From positions 1,930,917 to 1,994,916 of the forward strand of contig NC_068983.1 of NCBI RefSeq assembly GCF_001194135.2: a stretch of DNA of 64,000 nucleotides. Reading direction: 5' to 3'. The stretch comes from Octopus bimaculoides (taxonomy: Eukaryota). The stretch's first letter is position 1. Every line of letters begins with the position of its first letter. This document shows, one piece after another, positions 1-29,800 of this stretch. The notes beneath the pieces are model-generated. The model searched no databases. It saw nothing but the letters and a program-made list of their open reading frames with translations, and had not been told where the DNA came from. A program made the translations under genes and the position numbers.

Positions 1-929
1 TAAATAATTTCCCCTATTTTTGCTGCTCTTGGTTTGAAGCGAGACACAACCACTTGTCAATAACATGATTATTAACAAGCTACAGAATAACAACAACAGT
101 ATCAGTGAAAGTAGCAGTAGTAGTAGTAGTAATATAGGATCACAGTTACGAAGTTAGAGAGATCTCTGTATTCGTATGCATATAAGCAAACATTTGGGAA
201 GCAAAATGCACAGTAAACGGGGGTAAATATCTAACAAAAGACATAGTAAGCCCCAACGAAGAAATATCTATGAATATAATAAATAAATACATAAGTTTCA
301 GAATAATATATGCGCAATATATTTTATGTGCATAGTCATAAATCTCAAGAGAGCATAAATATGAAGATAGCAGGTAGAAATGCTTGGAGATATGATAGAG
401 AGGATATGTAATGAAATAGAAAAAAATGGAAATAAAAGAAATATTCTCAAATGAAAGTAAGAACATTTAAAATAAATGTAGCAAAATAAGACATCTTCGA
501 TTTTGCAAAAGACATTTAAATATATGTGAAAATAAATAACACCGAAAAATGTCAGTGTTTATAGTTATCAAACGATAGAGAACTGAAAAGGAATACAAGC
601 GATAGAGAAATGAAAATGTAAATCAAATAACATGCTCTTTTATTAACTCATCAGACAAACATAATTCTGTCGTTCAGAAGTTCGATCCGCAACTATACTT
701 TTAAGGTTTCAGTCGCACTAGAAAGAAACCTGAAACAGGCGTTGCTGTGTAGTAAGAATATGCTTGCCAACCACACTAAACATTATATGTGTGAACCTTT
801 TTCAAGACCTACAAATCGTACGAGAGCCAACTCCCTGTCTGCATTAAATAAACTCTTCCAAGTGTAAGGAACTTATTATAATGGTGAAGAGGCTCTAGAG
901 ATTTATCAAATCTTAATTTCAAATTGTTT

Positions 930-1130
930 TATATTTCACTTGCTTCAATCATTAGACTGTGGCTATGCTGGGGTAATATCTTGAAAGATTTTACCCGAAT
1001 GAATTAATTCTAGCGCTTTCTTTCATCCTGCTACTTACTCTATCGGACTGTTTTTGCGAACCGCATGATTACTAGAACGTAAACACAATAACTCCTGTTG
1101 TCAAGCGGTAGTGGGGGGACAAACAAACAA
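930..1130 (-). mobile_element. SINE family A (tRNA-head SINE with CR1-like tail), 3' half
   Basis: Degenerate reverse-strand match to the tail of the fuller copies at 35355-35760 and 40774-41205 (cttgcttcaatcattagactgtggctatgctgg...gcgaaccgc...gtcaagcggtagtggggggacaaac). Confidence 0.7.
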
Positions 1131-1134
1131 ACAA

Positions 1135-1172
<38 letters not shown>

Positions 1173-1184
1173 GTATATATGTAA

Positions 1185-1220
<36 letters not shown>

Positions 1221-1319
1221 GAGTTAAGTAATTGTGTAGATAGCATCGGAAGTGGTAAATATACAAGCGAGGTGACAACCGAAGACTCCTGTTCAGGCCA
1301 TGAGTATCTTAACTGAATA

Positions 1320-1525
1320 AAATTTTAAGACCCTTGGACCGCTGAAATCTACAAGTTTCTTTCTTTCTTTCTTTCTCTCTCTCTGTTTGCTTTCTCTTAT
1401 TCCTTTCTGCTGAAGAGTGTAGGCTCGAAAGGTAAAATACAATTTCGTTTTTCCGGAGCGTCGAACTAATACACTTGCTAGTTGTTCATACAGCTGTCTT
1501 CGTCTTTTGTGTTTCTATAAATTTC

Positions 1526-1530
<5 letters not shown>
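1320..1530 (+). mobile_element. Penelope-like pLTR fragment with hammerhead-like core
   Basis: CTGAAGAgtgtaggctcGAAA at 1410-1430, then ctgtcttcgtcttttgtgtttctataaatttcaac(TA)n. A homologous copy lies inverted at 9181-9320. Confidence 0.6.
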
Positions 1531-1585
<55 letters not shown>

Positions 1586-1959
1586 CCGGTCAGATTGTGA
1601 CCACTGATGTCGAACCTATAAGACGCTTAGTTGTATAGGCAACTCCTCAGCCTTAAGTGGCCGGAGGTATAAAACCTTCCTACAACTGGAGAAATGGATG
1701 TCATTTTGAGAAAAAAATTCCTAAAAACATTCGGAAAAGATTCTACTGGCAAAGCTTTGGACGAGGCAGAATCATCCCCTTACATCAGTATCAGCTATAT
1801 CTACGACAGGCCAGGCAAAGGTGCCCGAGGCTGGCAGCATTTCCATTCTTGGTAAATGAAGATTTCTATGTTTTCCACATAAATTCCGTCTAATGTGGGC
1901 ACTGACTGAACACATATGTTTTCGAGTTTAAAATGTCCCCGGACTAAAAGAGTCCTTCA

Positions 1960-2122
1960 GGATTCTTGCTCTTTCGGACCTTATCGATTCAGCAAAACAT
2001 ACCGATGGGTTAAGTTCCAAGTTTGAATAGAAATAGCTATTGGTGTAGATTTGTTCGACTAAAATTCTTCAAGGCAGTGCCCCAGCTTGGCCGCAGTCTA
2101 ATGACTGAAACAAGTGAAAGGT
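1960..2122 (+). mobile_element. SINE family A, 3' tail fragment
   Basis: gatttgttcgactaaaattcttcaaggcagtgccccagcttggccgcagtctaatgactgaaacaagt matches the family A tail (compare 46960-47040). Confidence 0.75.
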
Positions 2123-2542
2123 ATACGGTGGTGTTATCACAGATGCACTGCGTCTGGAACAGGTGCAGAATGCTCACAGCTAGATTCACTTTGCTCATTC
2201 ATTGATTTATACGATGTGGATTACCAAATGTTAGACCTTTGATCTGTAAAATGTCTTTGCCCATACGATGGAAGTAATATTATCGTTCTTGTTATGTTTG
2301 GGTTGGGAAAACACAGAATTTATTTTCTTCTTGTAGCTACGTTTCTTAGATGTTTGTATTTTTGGCATTCACCTACTCAACATTCCGGATCTCATTTATT
2401 GTATATCGTTATTGTAAATTCTATCGTACCTGGCAAACGTGGCGGTTAGCGCGTGCCTCATTTCACACCATTCTTGAACAGTTTTCTTAAAGTGTTTGTG
2501 CCCTTTCGTACTTCCTCTGATTTAAACACACCAAACATATTA

Positions 2543-2758
2543 TTCTTTTCTACTCTAGGCACAAGGCCCGAAATTTTGGGGGAGGGGGCCAGTCGATTAT
2601 ATCGACCCAAATACGCAACCGGTACTTAATTTATCCATCCCGAAAGATGAAAGGCAAAGTCGACCTCTGCGGAATTTGAACTGAGAACGAATAGACAGAC
2701 GAAATTCCGCTAATCCTTTGGTCCGGCGTGTTAACATTTCTACCAGCTCGCCACCTTA
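2543..2758 (-). mobile_element. SINE family B (head aaggcggcgagctggcag...), near full length
   Basis: Reverse strand has a pol III-like head with B box gagttcaaattccgc. Multiple homologues at 3657-3797, 18963-19165, 19240-19393, 52790-52895, 55370-55580 and 62084-62297. Confidence 0.8.
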
Positions 2759-3186
2759 CAACAAACATATTGAAATTTCTACGGGTATTCTACTCTCTCA
2801 AAATTTAACAAACTGAAAGAAAATGTTATTCTAATATAATTGCGGAGATTTATTTGAAAAAAAATTTTAAGATTTATTCCAGTAGAAATTATTGCTCCCT
2901 ATTCAAAGACAGAGAACAACATTTTTCAGCCATAATGGTGACCTATTTTGAAACAAAAGCTTGAACGCTTGTGCGCAGTTATGCGTCTTTTATAAATATT
3001 TAATATTTGCTAAATGGCGTTTGTCAACATCCAAAATACTATTTTTTGAAGGGAAATACAATGATCCGTTCTTTGTTTCTTTAACATATTTTTAGATTTG
3101 TCTTGTAAAAATCTGTTTCCAAAACAAAATAAAAACACAGGAATCAAATGTAAGTTACAAATAGTATTCAGGAATTTTCCTCTTTG

Positions 3187-3556
3187 CGGCACTCCGTCGG
3201 TTACGACGACGAGGGTTCCAGTTGATACAATGAACGGAACAGCCTGCTAGTGAAATTAAGGTGCAAGTCGATGAGCATTCCACAGACACGTGTACCCTCA
3301 ACGTAGTTCTCGGGGAGATTCAACGTGACACAGAGTGTGACAAGGTTGGCCCTTTGAAATACAAGTGCAACAGAAAGAGTGAGAAAGTTGTGGTAGAAGA
3401 GTACAGCAGGGTTCGCCACCACCACCCTACCGGAGCTTCGTGGAGCTTTAAGTGCTTTGGCTCAATAAACACTCACAACGACCTGTCTGGGAATCGAAAC
3501 CGTGACCCTACGACTGCAAGTTTGCTGCCCTAACCACTGGGTCATTGCGCCTCTAC
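3187..3556 (-). mobile_element. SINE family C (tRNA-derived), full length
   Basis: Reverse strand starts ggcgcaatgacccagtggttagggcag (A box) ... ggtttcgattccc (B box). Collinear with the + copy at 37064-37421, including gggtacacgtgtctgtgga and the end ccctcgtcgtc...accgacggagtg. Confidence 0.85.
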
Positions 3557-3656
3557 ATTCAGGAAATTAACAGTATTTCAACACGTATAATGACACAGGG
3601 TGAATATTTAATATCACCATATTTTTACATTACTTCCAATATGATACTATTTTTCT

Positions 3657-3797
3657 TGAGTTCAAACGCCGCTGGAATCGATTTTGCCTTTCATCCTTTT
3701 GGAGTCGATAAAATAAGCACCAATTGATCACTGTAGTCGATGTAATCGAATTACCCACTCTTTCGAAATTGCTGGCCTTGTGCCAAAATTTGAAGCT
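3657..3797 (+). mobile_element. SINE family B, partial
   Basis: gagttcaaacgccgctggaatcgattttgcctttcatccttttggagtcgataaaataagcacc...ggccttgtgcc is the reverse complement of 2543-2700. Confidence 0.75.
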
Positions 3798-4575
3798 AAT
3801 ATGATAGAGTTTGTGAGTATCCCTGATTAGTGACAATGTAAATTAATAAGCTGTCATCTATTCTAGTTTGAAGTGAAATCATATCCTATGTCTTAAGTGG
3901 ATTCACTTACACAGCTTCTTCGCTTTTTGCTTTGTAAAATACACAAAGATTTGACTTAGTAGCACTAGCGCAAAAAAATAAGAGCAAAAATTAAGTATAT
4001 AAGGTCACGGAAGGGTAAAAAGGAGTCAACGACTCAATCGAATGGATTTATTTCTACTGCAATATTATTTTTAGAGAAATTAAGAACACAGCGGGAGATC
4101 ATGTTTGTTTCTCTAACAATCATTTATTTCTTTTCTACTGAAATAACAAATGGCATTAAAGATTGGGCCATGGTGTTTGAGGTGACGACTAATTAACTGT
4201 TTTCAATAATTTGGTACAGTTCAATTAAACAGCTTATTCATTCTGGAAGGGAAAAATATCACATATTCACGCACTAAAAATGGCTATTGACATCTGACCC
4301 ATTTCGCTACCATTAGCCCAACAAACAAACAGGCAATATTGTCTTCGAAACGCCTAGTCTAGAATAGAGGCAGCTGATAAAGGAATAATTCCATAAGTGG
4401 TTTGTCTGTTTTCCTATGTGTTCGTTCTGTTGTCTGTAAACAAAGTCCGTTTTTGTTTTTTATGTCCCCGTTCACTTTTCTGACGTTCTGTACCCGGATA
4501 TGCATATATATATACATGTAGATGTAGGTATGTACATGTATGTATGTATACATGCATATGCTCATATATCATTTG

Positions 4576-4606
<31 letters not shown>

Positions 4607-5646
4607 TATATTGATTAGTGTGTTCTAAAATTAGCAGGACAATATTGTCGTGTGATTTATATTTTTGCTATTTTAAGGAAAGGTATGTTAATTGTATTTG
4701 GATTTATGATAAAAGTCCATTTGTGTATAGTGCTAAAAGACACCTTAAATTTTCTAACAGTAGAACAAGGCCTCAGATTTTGAATGACGCGTGCAACTGA
4801 TTTAATCGAGATGAGGGATTGGTAGTTATTTAATAAATGCTGGAGCATCAGGAGCAAAGGTGATCTTAGTGTGAGATGAATGGAAGATAAAAAAATAACG
4901 TAAACCAATCCTAGAAGGCATTGAATCGATCATACAACCAGTTTCTTACTCGATGTCCTTTATATTGAATTAATATTATTATCAGAATGCCTAGCTTAGC
5001 AGATGAAATGCAATTTGCTTTCCTCTAAGGATAAATGTTTTTGTTCTTAGGAAAAATATGATACGATGTTATAAACGAAAAGAAATGGAGGTTTTGATTA
5101 GAAAACCGGTACTACGTTGGTGTGAAGTAAAACAGTCAACTAAAGGCAAAATCCAAAACTAGTTTGAAAATGAGAATAGGTTTGGTTGATGTGAGAAGAC
5201 AAATATTGGAATGTTTCGGAAAGAGTCCTTCAACAAAGGTCCGTCAGGTTCTTTCGTTCATGAAGCCAACCAAAGTTACTGGCGCCAACAAATTCGTATA
5301 GAATTATATTGCCATTTTCCCCGGAATAGATTCTCTCCATTTTACTCAGTCTGCTAAGATTCTGAATTTTAACCAGTTTAAATCTGCACTTTTATGTATT
5401 TTAATTACGTAAATCATTTTACTTCAGTATCTGATTGAAGTACCGTTAGAATACCGACAAAATTTAACCATAAAAGAAAACTTGTGCCACAAAACGAGAA
5501 ACACAATGAATCTTATTTAAATGTATAAATTGCTGTTGATATCTGAGGTTTACTTCAATTGTCACACATCAAACCAATATATCATGCGAACGTCTAAAAG
5601 CAACGGGATTAAAATTATAAACGAATATAAACAGTCTCTCTCTCTT

Positions 5647-5696
<50 letters not shown>

Positions 5697-6751
5697 CATA
5701 TATATATTTATTTATTTATATAACAGTGATCAAAATTATGTGTATAGCATTCAGAGCACACAGCAAATCTTGAACGAATAATAAGAAAAACAGAACAGCA
5801 GAGTCAACTAACTACATCTATAGGTATTTAAGAAAAACTTAGAAACATGTTTCCGAATCTTTATACGTAATCAAGCAAATTATACGAAAACAGATACATG
5901 TAGAAGTTCATTGTTACTGTCTCCGAAAAGTTACTTTCTTTGGCATGTATCGAATTTTCTTCTGGAAATGTCAAAATGGCAGCTTGGCCATCTCGCTGAA
6001 ATTTCATTCAATATATAATGTAAATAGTAAATGTGGCCAGCCATCTGAGACTATACACCACATTGCATCAGAATGTTCAATATTAGCCACTGTAATTATA
6101 TTCTTGGAGACATAACACCAAGTAAGTATGTTTAACATAGACAGGGTCAACTAACATTTTACAAAAATATAAGTAATCCACTACCTTCTTAGAATATAAC
6201 AATGTCTTCCTATTTTGGTGTGGAAAATGTTGTCGCTTCTACTATTCCACTGCACTAGGATTTAATTACTGACATCGAGATTATCTTTTAAGTGGATATT
6301 GGGCATTTAGTTCACGGATTATTTGTTATGAAATTGAATAGCCTCATGGCTGTCATTTATGCGGATAGAAGAGATACTTTGGCCGGTTGGCCGGTTTAAT
6401 GCCATCGCTTACCAGCTTGGGTGAATTTAGCAGAGTACAGTCTGTTCCATACATTCAGATCAACTCTTTAGTTTAAAAAGTATTCCTCTTCTTCTCACTA
6501 CCCTCAGACGCTCTGTAGAAGGTCAAATGCACTATCTTTTCTGTCTGAGTAAAATAAAAAAATAATTAGTCAAACGCGCTTTCTACAACACATACAAGAA
6601 GAATGCACACCTACTTCAAATAGGTTTCATTTCATTTTTTTCTTTTTCTCTCGCTTTTCACTCAATTTTGATGAAGGATTCACCGGGAAAGTTTGCCTAC
6701 TACTTTTCCTTTTTTCAGCAATTACTCATTCTGTATAACTTTTATTCTTAC

Positions 6752-6786
<35 letters not shown>

Positions 6787-7394
6787 CTTCTTTTCATTTT
6801 GTCCGTCAGTTTCCGAAATGCTTGTCTCTCATGTGAAGGCGGGTAGCCTAGTGTTAAATTTGTTGCACCCACGATCATTAGATCATGGGTTGCGTTCCCA
6901 GACTAGATCGTGTATTGTGTTCTTGAGCAAACTACTTTCTTTTACAATGTTCTTGTGGGGTGGGGACTGTTGCGTCAAAGAATAGACCCAAAGATTTCCT
7001 CTGCGTGTCGTAAAAGGCAGCTAAAAGAGGTTGAGGTAGGATTTGCAATCCGACTTCGTAAAACCCTTACCAGCAGCGACTACCCAAAAGACAAACAAAT
7101 GGATTGAAGGATTGTAACCCGAGTTGTGCAAAAACATCACCCCTGCTCCAGAAGTAGTAGGGAATCATCAACAAATGTTGGACGCAGCGATGCGCTGTTA
7201 CAACGCATGCAGCCATGCTGCCAATACTACTACTGCTACTATTACTACTACTGATGCTGCTGCTGCTGCAACCGTTGTCCGTCTCTTGTTCCTATCGTTG
7301 TACTTGTGCTATTTCACTGATAAAAATAATCTACTGCTTATCTCAAATTTCTTGCTCATTTAGTTTTAATCCACTGCAACTTTTGAAATAGCGA

Positions 7395-7812
7395 CGGTGG
7401 CCAATTTACAGTATTCCTTGAAAACAAGGAAACCTGAAGACATTATTGTAGTGGAAAACATGATGGTCATGTAAACACTCCCTTCGGTCATGAATGACTA
7501 TGGGATTGCGCCCAGAAAGTTCCCTTCCAAGGCACAGTCCGCGCAAGTTTGTTTTATGGAAGACCAACAATCATACATGCATACCAGCCTCCTCTCTCTC
7601 CACGTCACTGATGTTATCCAAGGGTGAGGCAAAGGTTGATACATCTTGGCAGCAGTGCGTTCGCAACTTATTTCTGCAGCTCAGTGAACTGGAACAACGT
7701 GAAATAAAGTATCTTGCTCAGGAGAACACAATACACAGTCCGGTCCGGGAATCGAATTCACTACCTCATGATTATTAGCCTGACGCTCTAACCCCTGAGC
7801 TAGGCGCCATCA
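7395..7812 (-). mobile_element. tRNA-SINE family D
   Basis: Reverse strand head gatggcgcctagctcaggggttagagcgtcagg...tgaattcgattcccggacc (A and B boxes), followed by cagttcactgagctgcagaaataagttgcg body. Confidence 0.65.
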
Positions 7813-8721
7813 CCATGAACGCCTTTGATAATTATCTCTCTGAGTACTGCTCTCTGTCAGTCAATAACTCTTGCAAATATTCAAATATTGGTTTTTAAGC
7901 AGATTCGTTGCGAATCATTCTACAGTGTCTGAATTTCGAGGAATCTGCATAGAAACCGCACAAGTACGCCCCACTCAATTACAAAATATGTGTGTCTGTT
8001 ATTACGAAGGTGTTATTGCCGATTATAATATTTTGATCTTTAGCAGGCTATGTTTTGTGAAGGAAATTTATTTCCACTTGCAAATCCCTATAAAAATGCA
8101 GAATAATCTTGCGTTTGTGTAAGGCACGCTCTTTAATCTCGTCTTGAACTCAAGCATATCTGCACAATATATCCAAGGTATTAATTATTCAGGATATACA
8201 TTATATTTCTAATTTCGCTGATATTTCGAATCGCTTCCTGCCAATGTGTGCCTCCAATAAGTCTTGTTAAGTATCCCTTTTCCCAAATCCTTATTTATAT
8301 AGCTTTCTCCAAATGCGAACCGCCAGTAAATACCAAACAAACACCTGTACCCTCTCTTTTGTGTCATATCTACGAAAAGCGGGATCTCGTCTGTCACTCA
8401 GCCAAAGCAAAGTTTTCGATGGAACAATGCCATGGCGTTGACAAGAAGAGAGGCCATCGAGTGTACCAGACCAGAATTTCCGTCTAGTTAAATGTGCTGC
8501 CTTTCGTTTATATTCCTTCGTCTATGAAGTGCCAGAAGGTTGTCTTCAGCCTTGCAGTGTTCGCTGATCTTACCATGTTTCACTGACTTCGCGCTTATAT
8601 ACTTTGGGCGGGAGGCAAAATATACAGTTACATATAATACAAATATGACAACGTCCGCCTTTCAATGTTGTTTTTTTATCTTTCTCTTGTATATTCTCTC
8701 TCTCGCCTCTCATTCTGTATT

Positions 8722-8774
<53 letters not shown>

Positions 8775-9180
8775 CATACACATTTAGATTAGCTGAAATA
8801 TGTTTGTCACATGTTACAACTGCTAAAAGACAAATACACTGCAGTTACCGCGGAGAAAAAATCTCTCTTATGATAAAAAGGTGTTAAAACACCCAGTTTC
8901 TTCAGTGTCGCCGTCTCTCGGGAATCTCAGACATCGATGTTTCGAGTTTTTGACTCTTGTCAATGAGATGTATGTACGACAGGCAACTCGGAACGAACTA
9001 AATAAAACTTGTATCTTTATAAATAATTCAGTCAACACGTTGACTGATTTGTTCTATTAGGTTGCCCGATCAAATTAATTAACAGAGCATAGGCGAAAAG
9101 CAATGTTTAGGTATGACCAGAATTTAGGTTAGTTGAAGTATTTCAACTAACCTGAATTCTGCTCATATCTAAGTAGTTTT

Positions 9181-9420
9181 ATATATAGTTGAAATTTACA
9201 GAAAAACAAAAGACGAAGACAGGTTATTAGCTTAACGCTCGAGAAGATGAGAAAGTATTTTACGTTTCGAGCCTACGCTCTTCAACAGAAAAGGACGCGA
9301 TGAAATAAACAGAGAATATATAAAAAAACCTTTGAGCTACAGGTCAATCATGGCGGCTGGACAAAGATAGTTAGACAGGAGAGCTAGGAAGAAGGGGAGA
9401 TGTTAAAGTATTGTTGAACC
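9181..9420 (-). mobile_element. Penelope-like pLTR fragment
   Basis: tacgtttcgagcctacgctcttcaacag (9261-9288) is the reverse complement of the hammerhead-like motif at 1410-1430. The flank gttgaaatttacagaaaaacaaaagacgaagacag also matches. Confidence 0.6.
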
Positions 9421-12118
9421 CCAAACGAAGGGTGTAAGTGTGTATAGGTGCTGTAAATGTGTGCGTGTGGATGCGTGTGAGAATGAGTTAGTACGTGTAT
9501 GGGATGGCGTTATAAAATACATATTCAAACATATTTCTATCACATCTCTCTCCCTCCCCCGCCTCTATTTTTCTCTCTCCCTCCTCCGCCTCTATTTTTC
9601 TCTCTCTATCTATCTGTCTTTTTTACTCGTTACTATATGTAGCCAAGTTTCCACGGTGTCGCCCTCACACTCTATCTCCCCTAACGCAATATATCAGATA
9701 TTACAATGTCACAAAGCTTGAAACCTCACTGCTATCTTCTAAATAAGACGATTTCTAGGAGCTAGTTTTGTGTCATTAAAGTTGGTGACGCCTGGATGTC
9801 TAACGCCTTCAACAACGACGACAACATTCAATAATGTGGCACGAGGCCAATATAAATTCTTTTATATTTGATAAAGCTGTTTAATCTCAAATCACTTCCT
9901 GTGTTAATTTGGGAAGGTAAATGGCAAATTGCTTTCGTTTAACAGATCGTTCTGTTATTTTGTAAACATCCTGTCATAATGATTGCTAATACTGTAAAGA
10001 GCATATAGATAATTACGGGCTAAGTACAGGGATCATAGTTTGGTATTTCTATGAAATCATTTTATTTAACCCATTAAAACACTTCTCGTTATTTCTACCG
10101 GATTTTCGATACTGTTCAACGTTGTTACTTAGCTCTGCAGTATTCCTAATAATAATAATAATAATAATAATGAACAGCAAAATTATTAGATATTATTGAA
10201 ATGTCTGTGACAGAAGTCTCCAGGTTTTGAAGCTTTGAGGAAATTGCTTTTCAATTGGTTGTGTTGCCACAGAGTCTCCTAAGAAACTATTCATTTGGTT
10301 GTAATTAGATTCTTTGACAGAAGATGATTTCCAAAATGTTTCTAATGATATTTTCCTTAATGCTAAACTTTTCTGCTCTGCTCTTTACACATTAATCATT
10401 TTAAACAAATTTTGATGGCTTATTTTCAACTTTGTAGTTTTGAAAGACTATTCAGATATGTAATTGAATGACTATTAAAATATGTAGTTTTGAAAAAAAG
10501 AAAGAAGAAATATATTTATTGAATATTTGATTTAAGGTGAATTTTGTTAGTTTTAGATATTTTAATATCTTAATTCGCGTTTTAGTATTTCCTTATATTG
10601 TACTTACTTCTATTCAACGTAGTTTTATTTCTTTTAATTTACCTGGAAGGAGAGTTAGTATCATTTGAATTATCTTACATCTCAACTTTCAATATCTATT
10701 TCACTATTTTACTTTCGCCTTCCGGTAATATTATGTATGTTGTTGTTGTCTATCTTCTCTACTATCACATTACATTCTTTAACGTCGATATGTAAGAATA
10801 AGAGTTTTAAAAATAAACTTACTTTCATGTTTATTCAAAGAAGTTCTTAATTGTTTGGCGATTGTCTGTTTTTCGTATAATTGATTTTACTAATGATAAT
10901 AATGTCTTACACTAACTCACATGATAATACAACGGTATACAACTGGTTCTGAAGCTTCAACGCTTTTCAGAAAAAGACGCTGTGACATTCATATGAGCTG
11001 TCACATTTCTTGAAACTCACAACACAAATTTCATGTGTTAGTCACTTTTTAGTTCATGAATGATATGTAATGCTATTTCAAACGTTCTGTTCTTTGTATT
11101 ATACAGTTTAAGGTCTACCATGCTTATTTTCCTTTTCCCGTTGCTTCTTGTTTAGTCTCGTTTAGCATGGTCGTCGAGTTGTCAGCAGCAGAGAGGTAAG
11201 AAGCTAACATGAGAAGGCCTTTTGGAAGAGTCACCTTCTTGTAGACATCTCTTTGACTATTTCATATTTCGTTTGGGTCGGTGAAATCTCCTGCTCTTTA
11301 TTCGTAACATGTCCTGTGCAGCTGGTGTTGCCTCGATTATGACAAATACATTTGGAATGCCTGATTAGGGAAATTGTCCAAATATTTCTGGCAATTCCGT
11401 TGTGCCAATGTCAGATCATATTACAGCTTCATATTTGCTTTAGTGGAAGCATAACAGGTACCTTACACACACATGCATAAAGACTGGAATTGATCATTAC
11501 TCACGGAAATTAATCTATATATATATATATACATAGATAGGTAGGAAAATAGGTAAATAAATATAGATAGACAAAGAGATAGATATTCAGTCTTATATTA
11601 TTGTGCATTGGGACCTTATTTTAACTATAGAGACTTCCCAAATATTTACGGAGCATATCTCGAACACACTCGCGCGTGCGCGCGCGTGTATATGTGAAAT
11701 TATGTTTATGCGATGGGTTTGTTCATTTCAACAGTCTTATATCCACATATATGTTGATATTGTTCATGCATGCCTTCAGTTATTATTAAAAGAAGCTCTC
11801 CTTCCAGGGCATAATATTGTTGCTACGAATTATGTAGCTGTATTAATAAAATTTATGAGTCTTGTTTTACGAGAATTAACATTGATTTCTCCACAGTAAA
11901 TCTCAAAGTTCTGTTTATAGATAATGCAGTAGAACATAAACTATTTCGAAACCAATTTTTCGATGCCCATTAGATATGGTAGAAAAATCTTTAGCAAATA
12001 GCGCTTTCTTGTACTTGTTATATGTGTATTTTGTGGTAGGCCGGTTAGGTCTTGGAATACACACTACACCTCAAGTCAATTTCTGTATTACTGTGATCTC
12101 TTCGGTCTTCCAACACAC

Positions 12119-12149
<31 letters not shown>

Positions 12150-12682
12150 CTAGCAGCTAATCCCGGTTTCACCCGGCCTGTTTGGATAATTTGGCTCTGA
12201 TCGTTTTCGGTTAGGTATAATCTATAACCGCGTTTCTCAACCTTATCATTTCGGGTCCCCTGTTTCGATTGGAGCCTCTAGCTGTATGAAGATCTCATCA
12301 CCCCACTGTCAGAAAATGGCTTCAGGAGTTGTGAAGAAAGAATTTGTACGTATTCTGTTTCTGAGAGCTATTCTATTGGACATCTGTATAATCATTAAAA
12401 CATTTATTTAATTATGAACATAGAAAAAAATTATACATTAATCCCAATTTTTGTAAGCAGTTGTAACCGTAAAATTGTATTTTCAGAGAGCAGAAATTGA
12501 AAGATGTATGAAATGGACGTGTGTGCGTGCATGCGTGCGTGCGGGAAAGAGAAGGAGGGCAAGATAGAGTGAATGAATGAAGTTGTGTGTCATTGACTTA
12601 CGTTGGCTGGCACGGCAAGTACGAAGCTTTTGAGGCGGCAGATGACTGGGTGATTTGGAAGCTGTGAAGAAATGCCGTCTTT

Positions 12683-13065
12683 TCAGTGGAGCACTTCTTT
12701 GTAGGCAACGTTTCTCGTTTTCCCTTCTGATGCAGAAACGTACAGACTTTCTGGCCTGCCAACAAGGGAGCATTCAACGTAATGTTGACCGAGGGAGAAC
12801 ACTTGCTCTGTTAGATTTAAACCAACCATTTGCACTAATTCACCCTGTACCTTATTTATTGCCATTTAACAGGAAATTGAAGCCGCTTAGACTTGTGGAT
12901 CGGAGGGAGGGAGGGACATTGGAGTTATAAGAACATCTTGACCAGCGGCAGTTCCGTTGAAGATGGTTGCCTGAAGAACACGTGAGTATAAATTTTGATT
13001 ATCATGCGCTTGCTGAAACACGTTATTGGCGCTTCCAATTGCCGTAAGAGCATGATGGGCGCCCC
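12683..13065 (-). pseudogene. Helitron Pif1-like helicase C-terminal remnant (frameshifted)
   Basis: Peptides across three frames: GAPIMLLRQL; SRVLQATIFNGTAAGQDVLI; KRLQFPVK; AINKVQG...VGLNLTEQVFSLGQHYVECSLVG...EGKTRNVAYKEVL. Together these match the Helitron helicase motif V/VI region. Confidence 0.85.
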
Positions 13066-14820
13066 ATCTCGGAACTTTCCAGGAAGTAATTTTTCCACCT
13101 CTTCGGACCTTTCCAGGAAGTAATTCCTCAACTTCCTCCCCTTTCTTGGATCTTTCCAGGGAGTAAATCCTCCCCTTCTTCATCACCTTGGAACTTTCCA
13201 GGAAGTAATTCCCCTTCCTCGAAATGATCCGGGAAGTAATTCCTCCCCGTCTTCGGACCTTTCCCAGGAAATAATTCCTCAACTTGCTCCCCTTCCCTGG
13301 GAATTTCCAGGAAGTAACACCTCCCCTTCCTCACTCTCCTTGGAACTTTCCAGGAAGCTCCATCGTCAGATTTTTGCAGGAAGTACATCAACGTAGAATT
13401 TTGCAGGAACTTGCCAGGATGACATTTTCAGGAATTACTAACCTCGGAACTTTCCAGGAAATAGTCAATCCGGATATTTCTAGTAAGTCCCATCCCTGGA
13501 ACTTTCCTGGAAGTAGTTAATCCTTGGAGCTTTCCCGAAAGACATTTGAACTTTGCAGGAAATCCACGAAGCTCCATCGTCGGAGTTTTGCAGGAAATAG
13601 TCCATCCTCGGAAATTTCCAGGAAGTCCCATCCCCGGAACATTCCAGGAAGTATTTAATCCTCCAAACTTTCCAAGAAGTCGCATCCTTGCAACTTCTCA
13701 GAAAGTAGCTCTTCCTCGGAACTTTCCAGGGAGTTGCCCATCCTCGAAACTTTCCAGGGAAAGCCGTGGAAATTTCCAGGAAGCTCTATCGTCAGATGTT
13801 TGCAGGTAGCAGATCAACCTTGGAACTTTCCAGAAAATAGAACTTTGCAGGATCTTTCCAGGATGACATCAGATATTTTCAGGAATTACCATCCTTGGAA
13901 CTTTCCAGAAAGTCACATCCCCGGAACGTTCCAGGAAGTAGTTATTCCTCGGAACTTTCCAAGAAATACCATCCTTGGAACTCTCCAGGAAGTAGCCCAT
14001 CCTCGGAAATTTCCAAGATATCCCATCCTCGTAACTTTCCAGGGAGTAGATCAACCTAGGAACTTTCCAGGAAGTTGCTCATACACGGAATATTTCAAGA
14101 CGTTTCCCATCCTTGGAACTTTCCAGGAAATTCGTGGAGCTTTCCAGCAAGTAGAACTTTGCAGGAACTTTCCAGGACGACATCAAATATTTCAGGAACA
14201 TTCCGGGAAGCTGCTAATCCTGGGAACTTCCGGGATGACATCGGGACTTTGCAAGAATTACCATTCTCGGAACAATCCAGGAACTAGCTCATCCTCGGAA
14301 CTTTCCAGTAAGTTGCCGATCCTCTGATCTTTGCACGAAAGCCGCAGAACTTTCCAGGAAGCTCCATCGTTGGATTTTTGCAGGAAGAAGTTCATCCTCA
14401 GAACTTTGCAGGAACTTTCCAGGACAATAGATGTTTTAAGGAATTGCCATCCTCGGACCTTTCCAGGAAATAGTCCATCCTCGGAAATTTCCAGGAAGTA
14501 ATTCCTCTCCTTCCTTGGAACATTCCACGACGTAATTCCCCCCACGGAATTTTCCGTGATGTATTTCCACTTCATCGGAACTTTCCATGAGTTATTCCTC
14601 CTCTTCCTTAAAAGTTTCCAAGAAGTAATTCACCCCCTCGGAACATTCGAGGAATTAATTCCTCCCCTTATGAACTTTCCAGTATGAAAATCCCCTCCTT
14701 CCTTTCCTCAGAATATTCCATGCGGTAATCGCTCCCCTTCTTGGAACTCTCCAGGAAGTAATTCCTCCCTTACCCTTGACGTTTCCAGGAAGTAATTCCA
14801 CCCCTTCGGAACTTTCCATA
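13061..14820. repeat. Structured minisatellite, unit ~25-35 bp, core GGAACTTTCCAGGAAGT
   Basis: Dozens of degenerate units. About 16 exact GGAACTTTCC and about 19 TTCCNGGAA by eye. Outer units carry GTAATTCCTCCCC linkers and inner units carry CCATCCT/TTGCAGGA linkers. Confidence 0.95.
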
Positions 14821-15983
14821 GCAGCCAAATCTCCCTGAAAACCTCTTATGTATTAATGCTACAATTCTGCGTCCTATGTAGTTTGAATGAGAAACTGTAA
14901 GGTATGTGAGCAACTGGTTGTGTTAATTGTCGAAGAAAGGGGAATTGCATTAGAAAAAGTTTTAATCGCTGTTCTCGGTAAGTATGGGGGTTAGGAAAAA
15001 AGAAAAGAGGCATTAAGAAGTTGATGCTTAGAATTGCTTTAACAGAAAATGAAGCTGTAAGAATTAATTGGGAAATTGTATATAAGAATTAATAGCAGGC
15101 GTATCCAATTTAAGAAAAGTGAAGTGAAAGAAGTATGGAATAATTATTATACGCTGTTGAAGATGAAAATGCATGGGAGAGCTATTGTATTTGACGTGTG
15201 TGTAATCATAGAGAAAGTGAAAGACATGAAATGGACTTACGTGTGCTTGTGTGTTTTGCGGCTAATTTGGCGGGTGTTTTGCAGTCAGCAGGAGGTAGTT
15301 TGTGTTTTATCTCTCGATCAATGGCCGGAAAAGTGAAAATATTCTTTTAATGTGTTTTGGGGAAAGGGGATCTTTTGAAGTGGGCGTCAAATGAAGAGAG
15401 ACATAAACTGAACTTCTCTTCAAGTTGGCGTGAGACAGAATAATTGGTGTGCGTGTGTACATGTGTGTGTGTTTGATGAGGTATGCGAGACAGAGAGAGT
15501 AATGTTGATGGTGTGTGTGTATATGAGAGAGAGAGAGAAAGAAAGGGAGAGGTAACTGAAATTTTTTTTTAGTTTTTGTAGTGAGTGAATGTGAGTGATT
15601 AATAGAAAAACCGAGAGAGTAATTATGTATGAATGGCTTCAGTGTCACACACTCACATATACGCATGCACACAGGTTGTTTTAATCGATTTTCTCGGTAA
15701 CTGTGGGGAATAGGAAAAAATATAAAGCGCGTTCCAGTCTATGCACCAGTCTCCACATGTGTGCCATTTTTCACGCGAATCCACCCAACCGTTTGGCCAT
15801 GAACCTCGAAACAAGAAAGAATACAACGGTCGCGCATGTTCAATTTATATTATAGGTAGATATACAATTCAATATAGACGATCGTGCGCAATGTTTTACC
15901 AAAAAGGAAAACTATAGTAGTCATTAAGTATGGCTTGGGTGTTAGAGCACATACATTGCTAGACGTCAGAGCTAAAAAGCTTC

Positions 15984-16395
15984 TAATGCTGTAGTCAAAG
16001 CACATTATTGTATACATATGTACTGACATGGATCGTAATTGCCCGAAAGCACTGGTCGAAATTTCCCTATAATAATCGGTCAGCTTCGGCTAATTCCGTA
16101 GCCTCATTGGTGAGGAAGGCTCGATTCGGTTGATTCCGGACTTGCTTCTCTGTTAGTACATACGTATTCGCAATAAAAAATCTATGGCTGATTTAGCAAA
16201 TCGCTAATGTATATACACTTATACTAACGGAGAAACAAGTCCGAAATCAGCCGAGTCGAGCGGTCCCCAGTGATGAGGCTACGGAATAAGCCGAAGCTGA
16301 CCGATCATTATAGAGAATTCTCGTCCTGAATTTTCGGGCATTACAGATCTTGTCAATACATATGCATATAATTATGTGTTTTAACTACAGCATTA
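15984..16395. mobile_element. Fold-back / MITE-like element 1
   Basis: Long imperfect inverted arms: taatgctgtagtcaaagcaca...gttagta (15984-16158) versus tactaac...tgtgttttaactacagcatta (16221-16395), with a spacer of about 60 bp. Confidence 0.75.
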
Positions 16396-17456
16396 AACCG
16401 TTTTAACTCTTATTTCTAGCAATGTAGGTGTTCCAATCCTCTAGTTATAAAATCATCGATTTACGATCACAATTGGTTCCGACTGACTGGTCTCAAGTCG
16501 ATTTGGTCGTAAGTTGGCTTAGAAAGCCTACATAGTTTGGTTTTATATTTTCACATCCTTAAGATGTATTCTTAGGTAAAAGTCAGACAGCATTCTGAAT
16601 TATACTGGCGTTAGTCAAACATTTCGCAGTCGTCTTACAAACAAATACGAGGCTGTCTCGATGTCTCCACGACAGTATATTAACCTAATACTTAGGATAA
16701 CCACGGTGGCGATTGATAACCAAACCTAGGCACATCATCCGTAGACGGGTTAATTTCTAAAAGATTAAACCCATTAGATTTCAACTTAACTATTATTGCT
16801 GCCGGGAGCTGGCGCACCAATCGTCGTAAAGTCGATTGATGGTAAGTGGGATAAGTCGTAAGTCGACCACGACTTGTGTATGTATGTATGTATGTATATA
16901 TATATATATATATATATATGCATGCATGTTTACATATTTATACATACATCTTTTGTTTTTTTCTTTTACGTTTCAGCCATTAGACAACGGCTACAATGGG
17001 AATGGGACAGTGTTTTGAATAATCTTTAGTCGAATGAAGTGGCCCCGGTACTTACTTTTTTAAAGCGTGGTCCCTTTTGGCAAATCGCTAAGTTACGTGA
17101 ATATATATGTGTGTGTGTGTGTGTGTGTTTGTGTGTGTGTGTTTGTGTGTGTGTATACACACACACATAAATTCAGCATTCAAATGAATCCGGTCTTTAA
17201 ATAGTGAAGTACCAAAGAGGTCGCGTCAGTGAAATTTTTATCGTGAACGAGCAATATTGAAACACAATAAACTAAACACGGATTTATAATCCGGCTGTGT
17301 GTAATCGTAAATGGCCGACTGAACTGAGATGTTTTAAGTGTTTAATTCTTATACGTGTTCACCTGTTGAATGCATATTTTTTTCGCATGATGTAAGAATT
17401 TTATTCGATAATACAAACATTTGAAACAGATGTAGTAAACCCACGATCTATCTGTT

Positions 17457-17513: not shown

Positions 17514-17923
17514 GTATTTACATGTGACAGATATTTGTCCTCATCTTTTTCAACGTTTCGGCTGATATACCCTCCACCCTTCATCAGGTGTCTTGGGGGA
17601 AAAGTTCTAATCTGGGTTCTCATGCCTAAGGTATTTTTCAATTTTGTTGTTATTATCATTATTTATTATTATTATTGTCATTAAGAGCGCGGGCTACTAA
17701 GCCCAAAATTCCGACTTATATTCCAGGCAGTGACCTGATTAATGATAATAATAGTAATAACAAAATCGAAAAATACCTAAGGAATGAGAACCCAGATTAG
17801 AAATTTCCCCCAAGACACCTGATGTAGGCTGAAGGGTATATCAGTCGAAACGTTGTTAACAACAAAAAAGATTAGGACAAATATCCGTCAAATGTAAATA
17901 ATGTACATTATTCCTCATCTCTT
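17511..17923. mobile_element. Inverted pair of Penelope-like pLTRs with hammerhead-like cores
   Basis: 17511-17660 is the reverse complement of 17741-17900. Consensus cCTGATGAaggctg-gagggtatat-cagccGAAAcgttg. Both outer ends abut (TA)n. Confidence 0.7.
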
Positions 17924-19417: not shown

Positions 19418-19908
19418 ATAATAATAATGCTTGAAAATGATCACATCTCACTCCTCTGGAACTTCACCATTCAAACTGACAGAAAGATGGATGCGAAAAG
19501 GCCAGACATTATATTGAAAAAAAAATTCAGACAAAACTCATACCTCCTCATTTATATGACCGTCCCAATCAATATAAATGTATCTGTCAAGACCTACCAA
19601 AAACTGAGCAGGCATAAAGGTCTTGAAAATGGAAATTGGCAGATACCAGGACACCCCAAAACGGCAGAAATTCAAAAGATAGTGCTAATGGGAACTGCCC
19701 ATATCCTACGTAAAATACTGTTTATGTAATCTCAAATTTTAAAACAAACTCATATTTTTCTTGTTTTCTGAAACATTCTCTAGAACAATACTATGTGCGA
19801 AACCAAATATATGACACCCTAGGCATAACACCAACATGAACCTCTAGCTTGTTTGTCTCTTGTGGTCTCTGGGTGAGACTTGATGTCAACTTGTACAAAT
19901 ACAAAGCT
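19418..19908 (+). mobile_element. R4/Dong-like RLE LINE, 5'-truncated copy A
   Basis: ORF 19427-19729 has LLWNFTIQTDRKMDAKRPDIIL...MTVP...EIQKIVLMGTAHILRKIL, the restriction-like endonuclease PD..D region and C-terminus. Its 3' UTR is shared with copy B, and it starts directly after (AAT)n. Confidence 0.85.
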
Positions 19909-22020
19909 AAATTATTAACTGAATTAGAGATTGACCAAATTAAACAATTAGTAAGAGATCAAATGAATGGAGTTGCAACTAAAGCAGATACCACTGAAGA
20001 AATAATTACAGACCAACACAGGTCTGATGAAAATGCAGTAATGACAGAAAGAGTCAATGTAACAGATAAGCAAAGTGAAATACTTTTTGAACCAGCCATA
20101 AATATCAAGAAAGACGAAAACATCTGTCTTGACTGAATAGACGTATTACCTTTTAATAGAAAGTCGCATCTTTCCTAATGAGCATAGAGGATTTAAATGT
20201 GGGCCCTATGCTTGCAAAGCTCACCTACTCACCAATAGGATAGTTTTAGAAGATTCTCACAAACAACACAAGAACTTACCAATAACCTGGATAGACTATA
20301 AAAATCCTTCGATAGTCTTCACACAACTGGATTAGAAAATGTTTGGAAATTTATAAAATAGAACCTACTCTGCGAAACATGGTAAACGGCACTGACTTTG
20401 AATAGTCAAAATGAATCTTTCAATGCTGAGGATGTAAGAATTCCATGTGTTATTTTCCAGGGTGAATCTCTATCACCTCTCCTCTTTTGTCTAACCTTTA
20501 TACCTTTTTCGAAATTGTTTGATGATGTACAATATGGCAATAACATTTTTTTGAAAAAAATATAAATCATGTCTTTTACATGGATGTTGTAAACTCTTTG
20601 CAAAAAATGACCGACAACTAGAAGGTTTACTGGCAATTGTAAAACAGTTCAGTGATGAATTCAGGATGGAATTTGGCCTAGGTAAATGGGCGGAAGCTTC
20701 CTTTATCAGAGGAAAATGATAATAACATCCACCGTTAACCCTAAACAACAAAATGCTATAAACGAATTGGAACCAGCGGAGGGATATTTGAACGTGATAG
20801 AATCAAACATTCATGAGGGAAACGATTAGAAACGAATGTTATCGCAGGGTTAGGGCAATACTAAAGCCAGAGCTGAACGCAAGAGACAAGATCGAAGCGA
20901 TCAATATTTTAGCCAAGCTTGTCGTGACTTACAGTTTCAATATTATAAACTTGTCAATTACTGAAATCAGAAAACTTGACAGGAAATTACGAATATTGTT
21001 GACAATGCATAAAATGCACCCACTTAGGGAGATATTGAACGATTTTACCTGCCAAGAAAGAGAGGGGCGCTGTGAACATTTTCTAATGGAATTGGCAATG
21101 AAGATCGCCACAATTATTGGCCTAAACACCTACCTGAAAATCTCCGATGAATAGACGTTAAAACTTGTCTTAAACCATGAAAACAAGAAAACAACAGTAA
21201 CAAAACAGTAACAAACCCAGCAGCGCAATATCAATGCCTACCTATAAGAAGCAACCTGGCTAACATCTCAAAGAACGGTAGTAGCCCAACATGTCGTGTA
21301 TGTAAACAACAAAATGAAACCATCGATCATGTTTTCTTCATGTGCAGCCTTCTTGCTCCTACACAATATCTCCACATGCACGATAGAGCAACACAGTATG
21401 TTCACCGGATAATTTTCAAAGACTTAGACCTGCCCCATGATAAAATCTAATGGGAACACAAACCCCCTCTAGTGCTTAAAACTGATCACATCTCAATCCT
21501 TTGGTACTTTACTATTCAAACTGACAGAAAGATAGATGCAAATAAGCCAGATATTATATTGAAGGTTTACAGAAAAAAACATACCTTCCCATCGATATGA
21601 CTGTCCCATACCGAATGAATCTATCAAGACCTATCAAAATCGGAGCTAATATAATGATCCCAGATACCAGGAAATCCAGAATCGGAAGAATTTCTAAAAA
21701 TAGTGCTCATGAGAACTGCTCATATCCTAACAAAAATATTTTTTATGTAATCTCAAAAACATTTTAATCTATACTTTTAAGTGTACATAATAGCAGACAC
21801 CTTTCACTGTTATCTTAAAAGAAGACTATCGTCTTTAATCAAATTAATTTTAGAACAGACTTCTTATCTTCTTATGTTTTTACAGACATTCTCTAGAACA
21901 ATAATTTGTGCAAACCCAAAATATGGCACCCTAGTTATAACATCAACTTCAACTTCTAAATTCTCTCTTCAGGTCTTTGGGTGAGACTTGGAGTCAACTT
22001 ATACAAATCCAAAGCGAAAG
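19909..22020 (+). mobile_element. R4/Dong-like RLE LINE, decayed copy B
   Basis: RT motifs: DYK..FDS (~20295), IFQGESLSPLLFCL (~20452), degenerate YMDD (~20573), RVRAILKPELNARDKIEAIN (20813-21154). CCHC knuckle CRVCKQQNETIDHVFFMC (~21294), KPDIIL (~21542), KIVLMRTAHIL (~21697). Contains stops and frameshifts. Confidence 0.9.
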
Positions 22021-24246: not shown

Positions 24247-25237
24247 CAGGGGTTTGACAAAATAATGGAAACACCTACCCTCATAGTATCATAATTTTCA
24301 AATATCTATAAAACGGTCATTTATTTTTATGGTTTTTGATTTATTATCAGTGTTGCTTAATATGTTTTGCTAAAATTGCTGTTTCTCTTCAGATATCATC
24401 AGAAAAAGGTAATTATATTTCATTAAAATGACAGATATATCGGCCTTTCAAAGAGGTCAAATTGTTGGTGCTCGTATGGCAGGCGCTAGCGTAAGGAAAA
24501 CAGCCGATATGTTTGGTGTATCAAGAATTACTCTCTCGAAAATAATGACAGCTTTGAGAATGTGGGGGAAAACTACTTGCCGAAACAAAACTCCGGAAGA
24601 AAACCAAAACTTCGGATCTTCGGACACTTACGCAAATAGTTAGAAAGGATCACAAAAGTACCACTTCGAGAACCCAGTTTCCACAAAAACTATTCGCCGG
24701 GAGCTTCACAAAGGCGGATTTCATGGGAGGGCTGTAATCAGAAACCACTACTTTCAAAAACAAATGTTTCAAACCGTTTAGAGTGGACTGAAAACCTATA
24801 GAATTGGTCCCTAGAGCAGTGGAAGAATGTTATTTTCTCGGACGAGTCATCCTTTACCTTATTTCCGACCACCGGCCGAATATACGTGTGGAGTTAGCCA
24901 AAAGAAACATTTGACCCAGATTGCCGAATATTTAAGCATTTTATCGGATTAAATTCATACTATGGTTGCGGAACTGTTTCTGGAGGGAAACGCAATATTT
25001 CAGCATGATAATGCACCAATTCACACAGCTGAATTTGTTACTGAATGGTGCATTTTAGAAAAGCAATTAAGGAATCGAGAACTGGAGACCTTTGTAGCTG
25101 GAAAGGATTCAAACTTTGTACGAGTCCATACATCATAGAATTCAAGCTATAATTACTGCCAACTGCGGTCCTACCCCATATTAAAATTGATTTTGTTTCA
25201 AATTTTAAAGTGTTTTCATTATTTCGTCTAACCCCTG
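24247..25237 (+). mobile_element. Tc1/mariner DNA transposon, internally deleted
   Basis: TA|CAGGGGTTTGACAAAATAATGGAAACAC ... GTGTTTTCATTATTTCGTCTAACCCCTG|TA gives TIRs plus TA TSD. HTH MTDISAFQRGQIVGARMAGAS (24428), IFSDESSFTLF (~24832), FQHDNAPIHTA (~24998). Confidence 0.92.
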
Positions 25238-27707: not shown

Positions 27708-27722
27708 CATCTATATAATGTA

Positions 27723-29556: not shown

Positions 29557-29587
<31 letters not shown>

Positions 29588-29775
29588 ACTTCGTTATGGC
29601 ATGAATGGACTTAGCTCATGTTGGCAAACTTTAAAATTGATAAAAGGTATGGCTGGAAATCGATTTCTACCGCTATCCGTGGGTACCTCGGGAAAAATAA
29701 TGTGATGAAAATACAGCTAGCGGCATGGCTGCTAATGTGTGGACGTGCATAAATTACTTTCACGTACACATACAG

Positions 29776-29800
<25 letters not shown>
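27723..29800 (-). mobile_element. Helitron 2, helicase-only deletion derivative
   Basis: Minus-strand 3' end is a degenerate hairpin plus CTGG|T at 27726-27722. Two ~110-bp subterminal direct repeats (~27800-27915 and ~27985-28090). Helicase remnants at 28092-29524. The 5' boundary is uncertain. Confidence 0.75.
28092..29524 (-). pseudogene. Helitron Pif1-like SF1B helicase (frameshifted)
   Basis: Walker A FFLDAPGGTSKS, motif II LIVWDECTM, motif III LSGDFRQTLPVIP, TILTPQNVAVNAIN, MLIRN...CNGTRL, FRRSQFSVRPRFTMSINKSQGQTL. Split over four ORF fragments. Confidence 0.92.

Follow-up and report, generated by a model that had tools for sequence, protein, structure and literature searches.

The stretch of DNA considered here, 64,000 nucleotides from the octopus Octopus bimaculoides (contig NC_068983.1, forward-strand positions 1,930,917 to 1,994,916; referred to below as the window), contains a tandem array of short units in which matches to the binding sites of several transcription factors overlap. 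The array occupies window positions 13071-14822 on the plus strand and abuts the broken end of a gene for a PIF1-type helicase. We consider it to be probably a neutral, old and decaying minisatellite, associated with the 3′ remnant of a dead Helitron-type element. An earlier description of the window, made from its letters without database searches and called here the sequence-only reading, had presented the array as a Helitron-borne, mobile cassette of overlapping heat shock elements (HSEs), STAT-binding sites and κB-like sites; what it observed is confirmed, and its interpretation is supported in part. In assembly GCA_001194135.2 the locus lies on CM046603.1, with the array near 1.944 Mb.

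Organisation of the array

Minisatellites consist of units of about 10-100 bp set head to tail in arrays of 0.5 to several kb, are non-coding, and contain variant units and higher-order blocks. The octopus array is likewise made of short head-to-tail units, is non-coding, and has both variant units and higher-order blocks. Core-anchored unit calling delimits about 60 units over 1752 bp (45% GC), each made up of a 15-nt core, GGAACTTTCCAGGAA, and a linker of 6-29 nt, and the periods returned by Tandem Repeats Finder are 26, 28, 34, 43, 54 and 82 nt. The tandem array of overlapping motif-like sites that the sequence-only reading described is thus real, with 60 units at 13071-14822. Matches to the core with five mismatches or fewer number 60 within the array; the 62 found elsewhere in the window are scattered and form no series.

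Three sub-arrays can be told apart by their units. The left outer sub-array (13071-13341, plus strand) has seven units of 31-44 nt each with the linker GTAATTCCTCCCCTTCCTC, the inner sub-array (13342-14482, plus strand) has 26- or 28-nt units with the linker GTAGTCCATCCTC and a higher-order structure, and the right outer sub-array (14483-14822, plus strand) repeats the unit type of the left one, the outer units on both sides measuring 31-44 nt and having the linker GTAATTCCTCCCCTTC in common. In the inner sub-array the variant units RGATNTTTGCAGGAA and AGATATTTTCAGGAA recur inside duplicated blocks; one example of such a multi-unit duplication is the pair 13821-13878 and 14135-14192, which are 90% identical.

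The array is old and degenerate, since the mean pairwise identity among its cores is 74% and the exact 15-mer GGAACTTTCCAGGAA is present in only 6 of the 60 units. A coding repeat was ruled out by the unit periods (26, 28, 34 and 43 nt), which are not multiples of 3. The open reading frames (ORFs) of the array gave no Pfam domain and no protein homologue, a search of the whole window against Rfam returned no match, and a literature search with the core 15-mer in either strand found no paper.

A helicase remnant joined to the array

The protein by which Helitrons are recognised joins a Rep endonuclease domain of the HUH class (Helitron_like_N) to a PIF1-type helicase. The 5′ end of the elements begins with TC, their 3′ end is CTRR following a subterminal hairpin, and they insert between A and T without duplication of the target.

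On the minus strand at 12686-13074 lies a pseudogene remnant for the C-terminal end (~135 residues) of a PIF1-type helicase such as Helitrons carry; a single frameshift near 12995, two in-frame stops and the loss of 6 residues have broken it. The homology starts within the first array core and reaches the final residue of helicase proteins, and the array and the remnant are joined without a spacer. When the array and its flanks were used as a six-frame query, two full-length Rep/Hel proteins with Helitron_like_N and PIF1 domains (P0121 and P0122; PF14214 + PF05970) were matched, the matching part being the left flank. In tblastn searches these two proteins and about 120 further helicases of the PIF1 type matched the remnant with E-values as low as 1e-23, and a profile built from 62 helicases scored 82.4 bits (E 4e-27) plus a further 14.7 bits, over model positions 256-390 of 391. 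The array is thus joined directly to what is left of the 3′ part of an older, second Helitron-type element, distinct from a helicase copy situated near 28 kb in the same window, with which the remnant element has no DNA similarity. Of the earlier proposal that the array is Helitron-borne, the contact with a Helitron-type gene stands, as the left edge of the array is fused to a PIF1-type helicase remnant; the rest is not supported, for no Rep domain was found between 14.8 and 27.8 kb and no end could be verified.

One candidate, unverified, for the Helitron 3′ end is found on the minus strand at 12149-12176, where CCGGGTGAAACCGGGATTAGCTGCTAG is followed by T (CTAG before T, at 12150-12153). It is placed 536 bp past the helicase stop, beside a (TA)n run, and has CTGCTAGTA in common with the terminus of the helicase repeat at 27.7 kb. 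A search between 10.5 and 12.7 kb produced no better Helitron 3′ end and no convincing hairpin. On the other side of the array, from 14823 onwards, no element module is recognisable, and the 5′ end of the element is not definable from a single copy. Flanking direct repeats were sought and rejected; the only match was one of 33 nt at 85% identity (12363-12395 and 15177-15209), which did not extend on alignment. This match brackets the remnant and the array together, and may be due to chance.

The other helicase copy lies at 28092-29524 on the minus strand, where Pfam matches to PIF1 are found and fragments between 28.1 and 29.5 kb match a protein of Octopus bimaculoides at 93% identity. It forms part of a 2-kb repeat (27718-29794, minus strand) that contains a frameshifted PIF1 helicase pseudogene and is 84-89% identical to at least three other O. 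bimaculoides loci; three paralogous copies (L001-L003) have only window 27718-29794 in common. The repeat terminates at ~27718 with ...GCTATACTGCTAGT, and its 5′ boundary is hidden in (TG)n/(GA)n microsatellites that are found in the paralogues too. This helicase was probably the cue by which the sequence-only reading arrived at a Helitron. That the array is part of the 28-29.5-kb helicase element was ruled out, as the element stops (...CTGCTAGT) at ~27718, 13 kb from the array.

Resemblance to transcription factor binding sites

The GAS, or gamma-activated site, to which STAT proteins bind has the pattern TTCN3GAA with TTCCNGGAA as its optimum, and the ETS site is CAGGAAGT. Exact string counts in the array gave 18 copies of TTCCNGGAA and 16 of the κB-like GGAACTTTCC, together with 4 of GGAAATTTCC and one of GGGAATTTCC (at 13299), so that the counts made by eye in the sequence-only reading (about 19 and about 16 for the first two) were nearly exact. 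TTCN3GAA occurs 26 times by direct string count. The array also holds 13 exact copies of CAGGAAGT, an ETS consensus that was overlooked in that reading. Outside the array none of TTCCNGGAA, GGAACTTTCC, GGAAATTTCC, GGGAATTTCC and CAGGAAGT occurs in the remaining 62 kb of the window, nor does the GAAnnTTCnnGAA discussed below.

The consensus unit contains a perfect palindrome, TTCCAGGAA, which overlaps CAGGAAGT, and can be described by its letters as a GAS/STAT-like palindrome with an overlapping ETS-like site and as neither an HSE nor a κB pattern. The STAT/GAS-like palindromes noted earlier are therefore real at this level. Both the GAS/STAT pattern (TTCN3GAA, optimum TTCCNGGAA) and the ETS pattern (a GGAA core within CAGGAAGT) are present as sequence matches only: what defines known GAS and ETS elements is that they bind their factors and are active in promoters or enhancers, whereas the octopus array offers string matches within degenerate units that show no sign of constraint. 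The best account of the likeness to GAS/STAT and ETS sites is the repeated copying of one short palindromic unit that resembles them.

The reading as heat shock elements is not supported. Two perfect HSE-like three-pentamers, GAACTTTCCAGAA (GAAnnTTCnnGAA), are found on the plus strand at 13823-13835 and 13898-13910, as had been stated, and a third trimer in the opposite orientation, TTCAGGAACATTC (TTCnnGAAnnTTC), which had not been reported, at 14191-14203 (plus strand). The proposal that a single-base indel switches a unit between HSE and GAS spacing did not hold; the two GAAnnTTCnnGAA trimers arise by a G-to-A substitution at core position 13 (GGAA to GAAA) that leaves unit lengths of 28 and 26 nt unchanged. 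The third GAA of the consensus unit misses the HSE register by one base, and three trimers in 1752 bp amount to 1.7 per kb. Nor does the κB label suit the array, in which the canonical site GGGACTTTCC is absent and only two sites (13299 and 14222) conform to GGGRNNYYCC, the consensus GGAACTTTCC being a misfit to this pattern for want of the 5′ GGG.

The system that the sequence-only reading took as its precedent is that of Caenorhabditis, in which Garrigues et al. (2019, eLife; PMC6927752) described Helitrons with overlapping true HSE trimers, of which an element has from dozens to over 100, at a density above 10 per kb. Annotated Helitrons with such arrays run into the hundreds, and HSF-1 binding to them was seen by ChIP-seq (chromatin immunoprecipitation followed by sequencing; PMC6927752). 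Heat-inducible neighbouring genes are a further mark of the system. In both systems, short tandem repeats of inverted GAA/TTC blocks adjoin Helitron sequence. However, the octopus array has 3 trimers in 1.75 kb, far from a density of more than 10 contiguous inverted nGAAn trimers per kb, and its consensus has STAT rather than HSE spacing; it is also one known copy, beside a dead helicase fragment. With 1.7 trimers per kb, the wrong consensus register and a single known copy, the octopus array does not show the features by which the Caenorhabditis Helitron-HSE system is defined.

Conservation and decay of the units

The sequence-only reading had itself named a pattern that would count against it, namely motif positions no better conserved than linker positions, and this is largely what the units show. 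In the outer units the linker block GTAATTCC.C has a conservation of 0.87 compared to 0.86 for the core, and in the inner units the linker block CATCC is conserved on par with the core, with only the indel-prone middle of the linker being weaker. Among the columns of the core, the degenerate N positions of TTCCNGGAA are 88-94% conserved, as against 74-80% for the critical C9 and 72-74% for A4.

For a test of intact motifs, each alignment column was shuffled among units and the motif counts expected in this way were compared to those observed. The observed counts were 18 for TTCCNGGAA (19.8 expected), 22 for TTCN3GAA (26.0 expected), 13 for CAGGAAGT (11.5 expected) and 28 for the HSE dimer GAAnnTTC (26.6 expected). 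Because these counts match the column-shuffle expectation, intact STAT/GAS, ETS and HSE-dimer sites have not been preferentially retained.

The dinucleotide at the junction of linker and core is CG in 25 units, TG in 17 and CA in 4, and the ratio of observed to expected CpG is 0.59 in the array compared to 0.83 in the window; this decay of the junction CpG is the pattern expected of unconstrained methylated DNA. Together, the core identity of 74%, linkers conserved like the core, motif counts at the level of the shuffles and the CpG decay argue for neutral decay.

Copies elsewhere and a comparable locus in Octopus sinensis

Copies of the array were sought in the window itself, in 275 kb of sequence surrounding 11 further helicase loci (O. 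bimaculoides and O. sinensis) and in metagenome contigs of the Joint Genome Institute (JGI), which together make up a small sample. Neither a second copy of the array core nor homology to the array flanks was found in any of the three, and two metagenome scans gave, respectively, no match and 13 isolated chance matches in unrelated coding DNA. Dispersed copies with common ends, which would be expected of a Helitron family, are thus missing from the small sample searched, and the description of the cassette as mobile could not be upheld there.

All 11 sampled octopus PIF1-type copies (L001-L007 and L022-L025) matched only residues 963-1512 of a 1513-residue Rep/Hel protein, and none of the 11 has a Rep domain. 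The abundant ‘PIF1-like’ genes of octopus may therefore be a helicase-only derivative family.

One of these loci, L022 of O. sinensis (GCA_006345805.1, CM016887.1: 3038901-3059668), provides a parallel to the array in the window. At L022 positions 1-11005 it has a tandem array of a 69-bp unit in at least 144 copies of 91% identity, with an open reading frame (RASETAEQRALRNTQNAAATANA), which extends past the start of the locus. The array stops about 10 bp before a PIF1 helicase fragment that matches Rep/Hel residues 1125-1490 and runs to the C-terminus. The unit derives from the 23-residue repeat found N-terminally in Rep/Hel proteins, a match equalled by 0-1 of 300 shuffles, and L022 looks like a Helitron derivative in which Rep was lost and the N-terminal repeat was hyper-expanded. 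The layout on one strand is identical in the two species, a long tandem array close to a 5′-truncated PIF1-type helicase that reaches the C-terminus. In contrast, the 69-bp unit, which bears an ORF and comes from a Rep/Hel repeat, has no sequence similarity to the unit in the window, the L022 array is young (91% identity, at least 144 copies), and its helicase is truncated at Rep/Hel residue 1125 compared to ~1359 for the remnant in the window. Since L022 shows the same arrangement, the joining of an array to a 5′-truncated helicase recurs in Octopus with unrelated units.

This recurrent layout fits the known link between Helitrons or Helentrons and tandem repeats in molluscs, where derivatives of these elements commonly bear internal tandem repeats (PMC7492417). 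Vojvoda Zeljko et al. (2020; PMC7492417) described the Cg_HINE elements of the oyster Crassostrea gigas, non-autonomous Helentrons with central satellite-like tandem repeats. In elements of this kind, to which DINE-1 also belongs, the array is bracketed by conserved left and right modules and many copies are dispersed; of the octopus array, one side is Helitron-type sequence. The likeness to the octopus array lies in the mollusc host, in a tandem array within or attached to sequence of the Helitron superfamily, and in the proposal that the array originates and spreads as a by-product of the element. Cg_HINE elements have conserved non-coding left and right flanks, dispersal throughout the genome and longer monomers, whereas the octopus array has units of 26-44 nt, the tail of a helicase pseudogene as one flank, an undefined second flank and no demonstrated dispersal.

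Origin of the array

We propose that replication slippage and unequal exchange multiplied a short unit with the palindrome TTCCAGGAA, within a Helitron derivative or at the truncated 5′ edge of one, that whole blocks of units were later re-duplicated, and that the array has since been drifting neutrally. Followed along the minus strand, the locus runs from the array (14822-13071) through the last ~135 helicase codons (13074-12686) and a non-coding tail of ~536 bp to the possible CTAG followed by T at 12150. The mode of growth, the place of the array as a part of the element and not just its neighbour, and its lack of function are three things that we infer.

A number of points weigh against this account. 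Two full-length Rep/Hel proteins used in tblastn found no Rep or further helicase homology beyond the array, from 14.8 to ~27.8 kb, and the hairpin of the candidate 3′ end has a stem of only 4 bp, with a fold no better than that of shuffled sequences (z = +0.54). As no Rep domain and no convincing termini were found, the array could merely adjoin the remnant, and a single copy is too little to fix the true boundaries of the element or a place for the array in a repeat family. As regards neutrality, GGRRNNYYCC is over-represented in the column-shuffle test, with 31 observed compared to 24.0 expected (1 of 2000 shuffles). This excess coincides with variant unit types that bear several linked changes and have been copied blockwise, and we attribute it, without proof, to the co-inheritance of those changes. 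Finally, a missing signal of selection among 60 related units is weak evidence for a lack of function, as an array can bind factors without constraint on every unit.

The most serious alternative, which we think has a modest chance of being correct, is that the array is an ordinary host minisatellite unrelated to any Helitron, and that the remnant adjoins it only through deletion or rearrangement of intervening sequence. Such a history would account for the fact that the helicase homology ends exactly at the array edge with none inside the array, that nothing Helitron-like can be detected past the far side, and that no ends of an element have been verified. It is harder to reconcile with a spacerless junction at which the homology starts within the first core, with the same layout at the independent O. 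sinensis locus, where the unit is demonstrably Helitron-derived, and with the internal tandem repeats that Helitron and Helentron derivatives of molluscs commonly carry (PMC7492417).

The view taken in the sequence-only reading, by which the array is cargo of a mobile Helitron family that spreads clustered HSF, STAT and Rel sites and renders octopus genes in their vicinity responsive to stress or infection, in analogy to the Helitron-acquired HSEs of Caenorhabditis, seems to us very unlikely. It draws on the density of 18 TTCCNGGAA, 26 TTCN3GAA and 13 CAGGAAGT in 1.75 kb, with TTCCNGGAA and CAGGAAGT found nowhere else in the window, on the contiguity of the array with a Helitron-type helicase remnant, on the Caenorhabditis precedent (PMC6927752), and on the activity of Helitrons in octopus ~25 million years ago (PMC13282606). 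Yet no second copy was found in the sample searched, only 3 HSE trimers and 2 GGGRNNYYCC sites are present with a consensus off the HSE register, the linkers are as conserved as the core and intact sites are not in excess, the remnant is a dead fragment without Rep domain or verified ends, and the nearest annotated gene in the window is 36 kb away.

A birth of the unit from Helitron coding sequence, by slippage in the NYPxEFLNSLEPPGLPPH segment just upstream of GxPIMLLRNL or, as in L022, out of the N-terminal 23-residue repeat, is very improbable and was rejected for want of any score above shuffles: although some BLAST alignments to helicases run into units 1-2 (NYFLERSEEVEKLLPG aligned to NYPLEFLNSLEH--PG) and the L022 array does derive from Rep/Hel N-terminal repeats, the apparent match in units 1-2 comes about because a single piece of DNA reads as NYFLE in one frame and as LLPGKF in another. 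In none of the frames did the array by itself score positively against the helicase profile. The junction peptide scored a mean of 15.2 against 65 helicase segments compared to 14.7 +/- 2.2 for shuffles (169 of 500 shuffles at least as good), and no resemblance to the N-terminal repeats emerged, 59-73 of 100 shuffles doing equally well or better.

Other features of the window

The only annotated gene found in the window, 36 kb from the array, is an intact single-exon gene for a G-protein-coupled receptor (GPCR) of the rhodopsin family, 438 residues in length, at 50865-52181 on the plus strand, annotated in GCA_001194135.2. The closest solved relatives are the receptors for gonadotropin-releasing hormone (GnRH), cholecystokinin (CCK) and oxytocin/vasopressin, and the protein is probably a neuropeptide receptor.

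Several other repeats are present. Fragments of a Tc1/mariner-type transposase lie at 24428-25138 on the plus strand, with a Pfam match to HTH_23 and the motif FQHDNAPIHTA in a neighbouring ORF. Two long inverted repeats, at 15975-16404 and 17551-17855, have arms of 137 nt at 79% identity and of 52-67 nt at 88-92%, respectively, and a palindromic appearance like that of miniature inverted-repeat transposable elements (MITEs). Between 19400 and 21700 on the plus strand, ORFs resemble the C-terminal part of the reverse-transcriptase ORF of a long interspersed nuclear element (LINE); the segments 19428-19641 and 21292-21659 are 82-89% identical to positions 18519-18906 of L001, which points to a dispersed retroelement family.

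Significance of the array

As the evidence stands, the finding is mainly one of annotation. It supplies a cephalopod example, along with a second in O. sinensis, of the known association of Helitron-superfamily remnants with tandem repeats in molluscs, and the array illustrates how the amplification of a single palindrome can yield what looks like a designed cluster of binding sites.

Two-thirds of the cephalopod genome consists of repeats, and its gene regulation is poorly understood. One further reading, decidedly improbable, would make the locus a decayed member of a cephalopod family of non-autonomous Helitrons not yet described, whose internal arrays would be dense platforms of composite STAT(GAS)/ETS sites and whose transposition would have scattered cytokine- or immune-responsive enhancers around octopus genomes; such a family would be the invertebrate JAK-STAT equivalent of the Helitron-HSE arrays in Caenorhabditis. 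We give only a slim chance to the array belonging to any dispersed family of STAT/ETS site arrays. Should the array nevertheless prove to be mobile and its STAT/ETS sites functional, this would make two independent cases in which Helitrons have rewired an inducible gene network, the octopus one being the first from a cephalopod.

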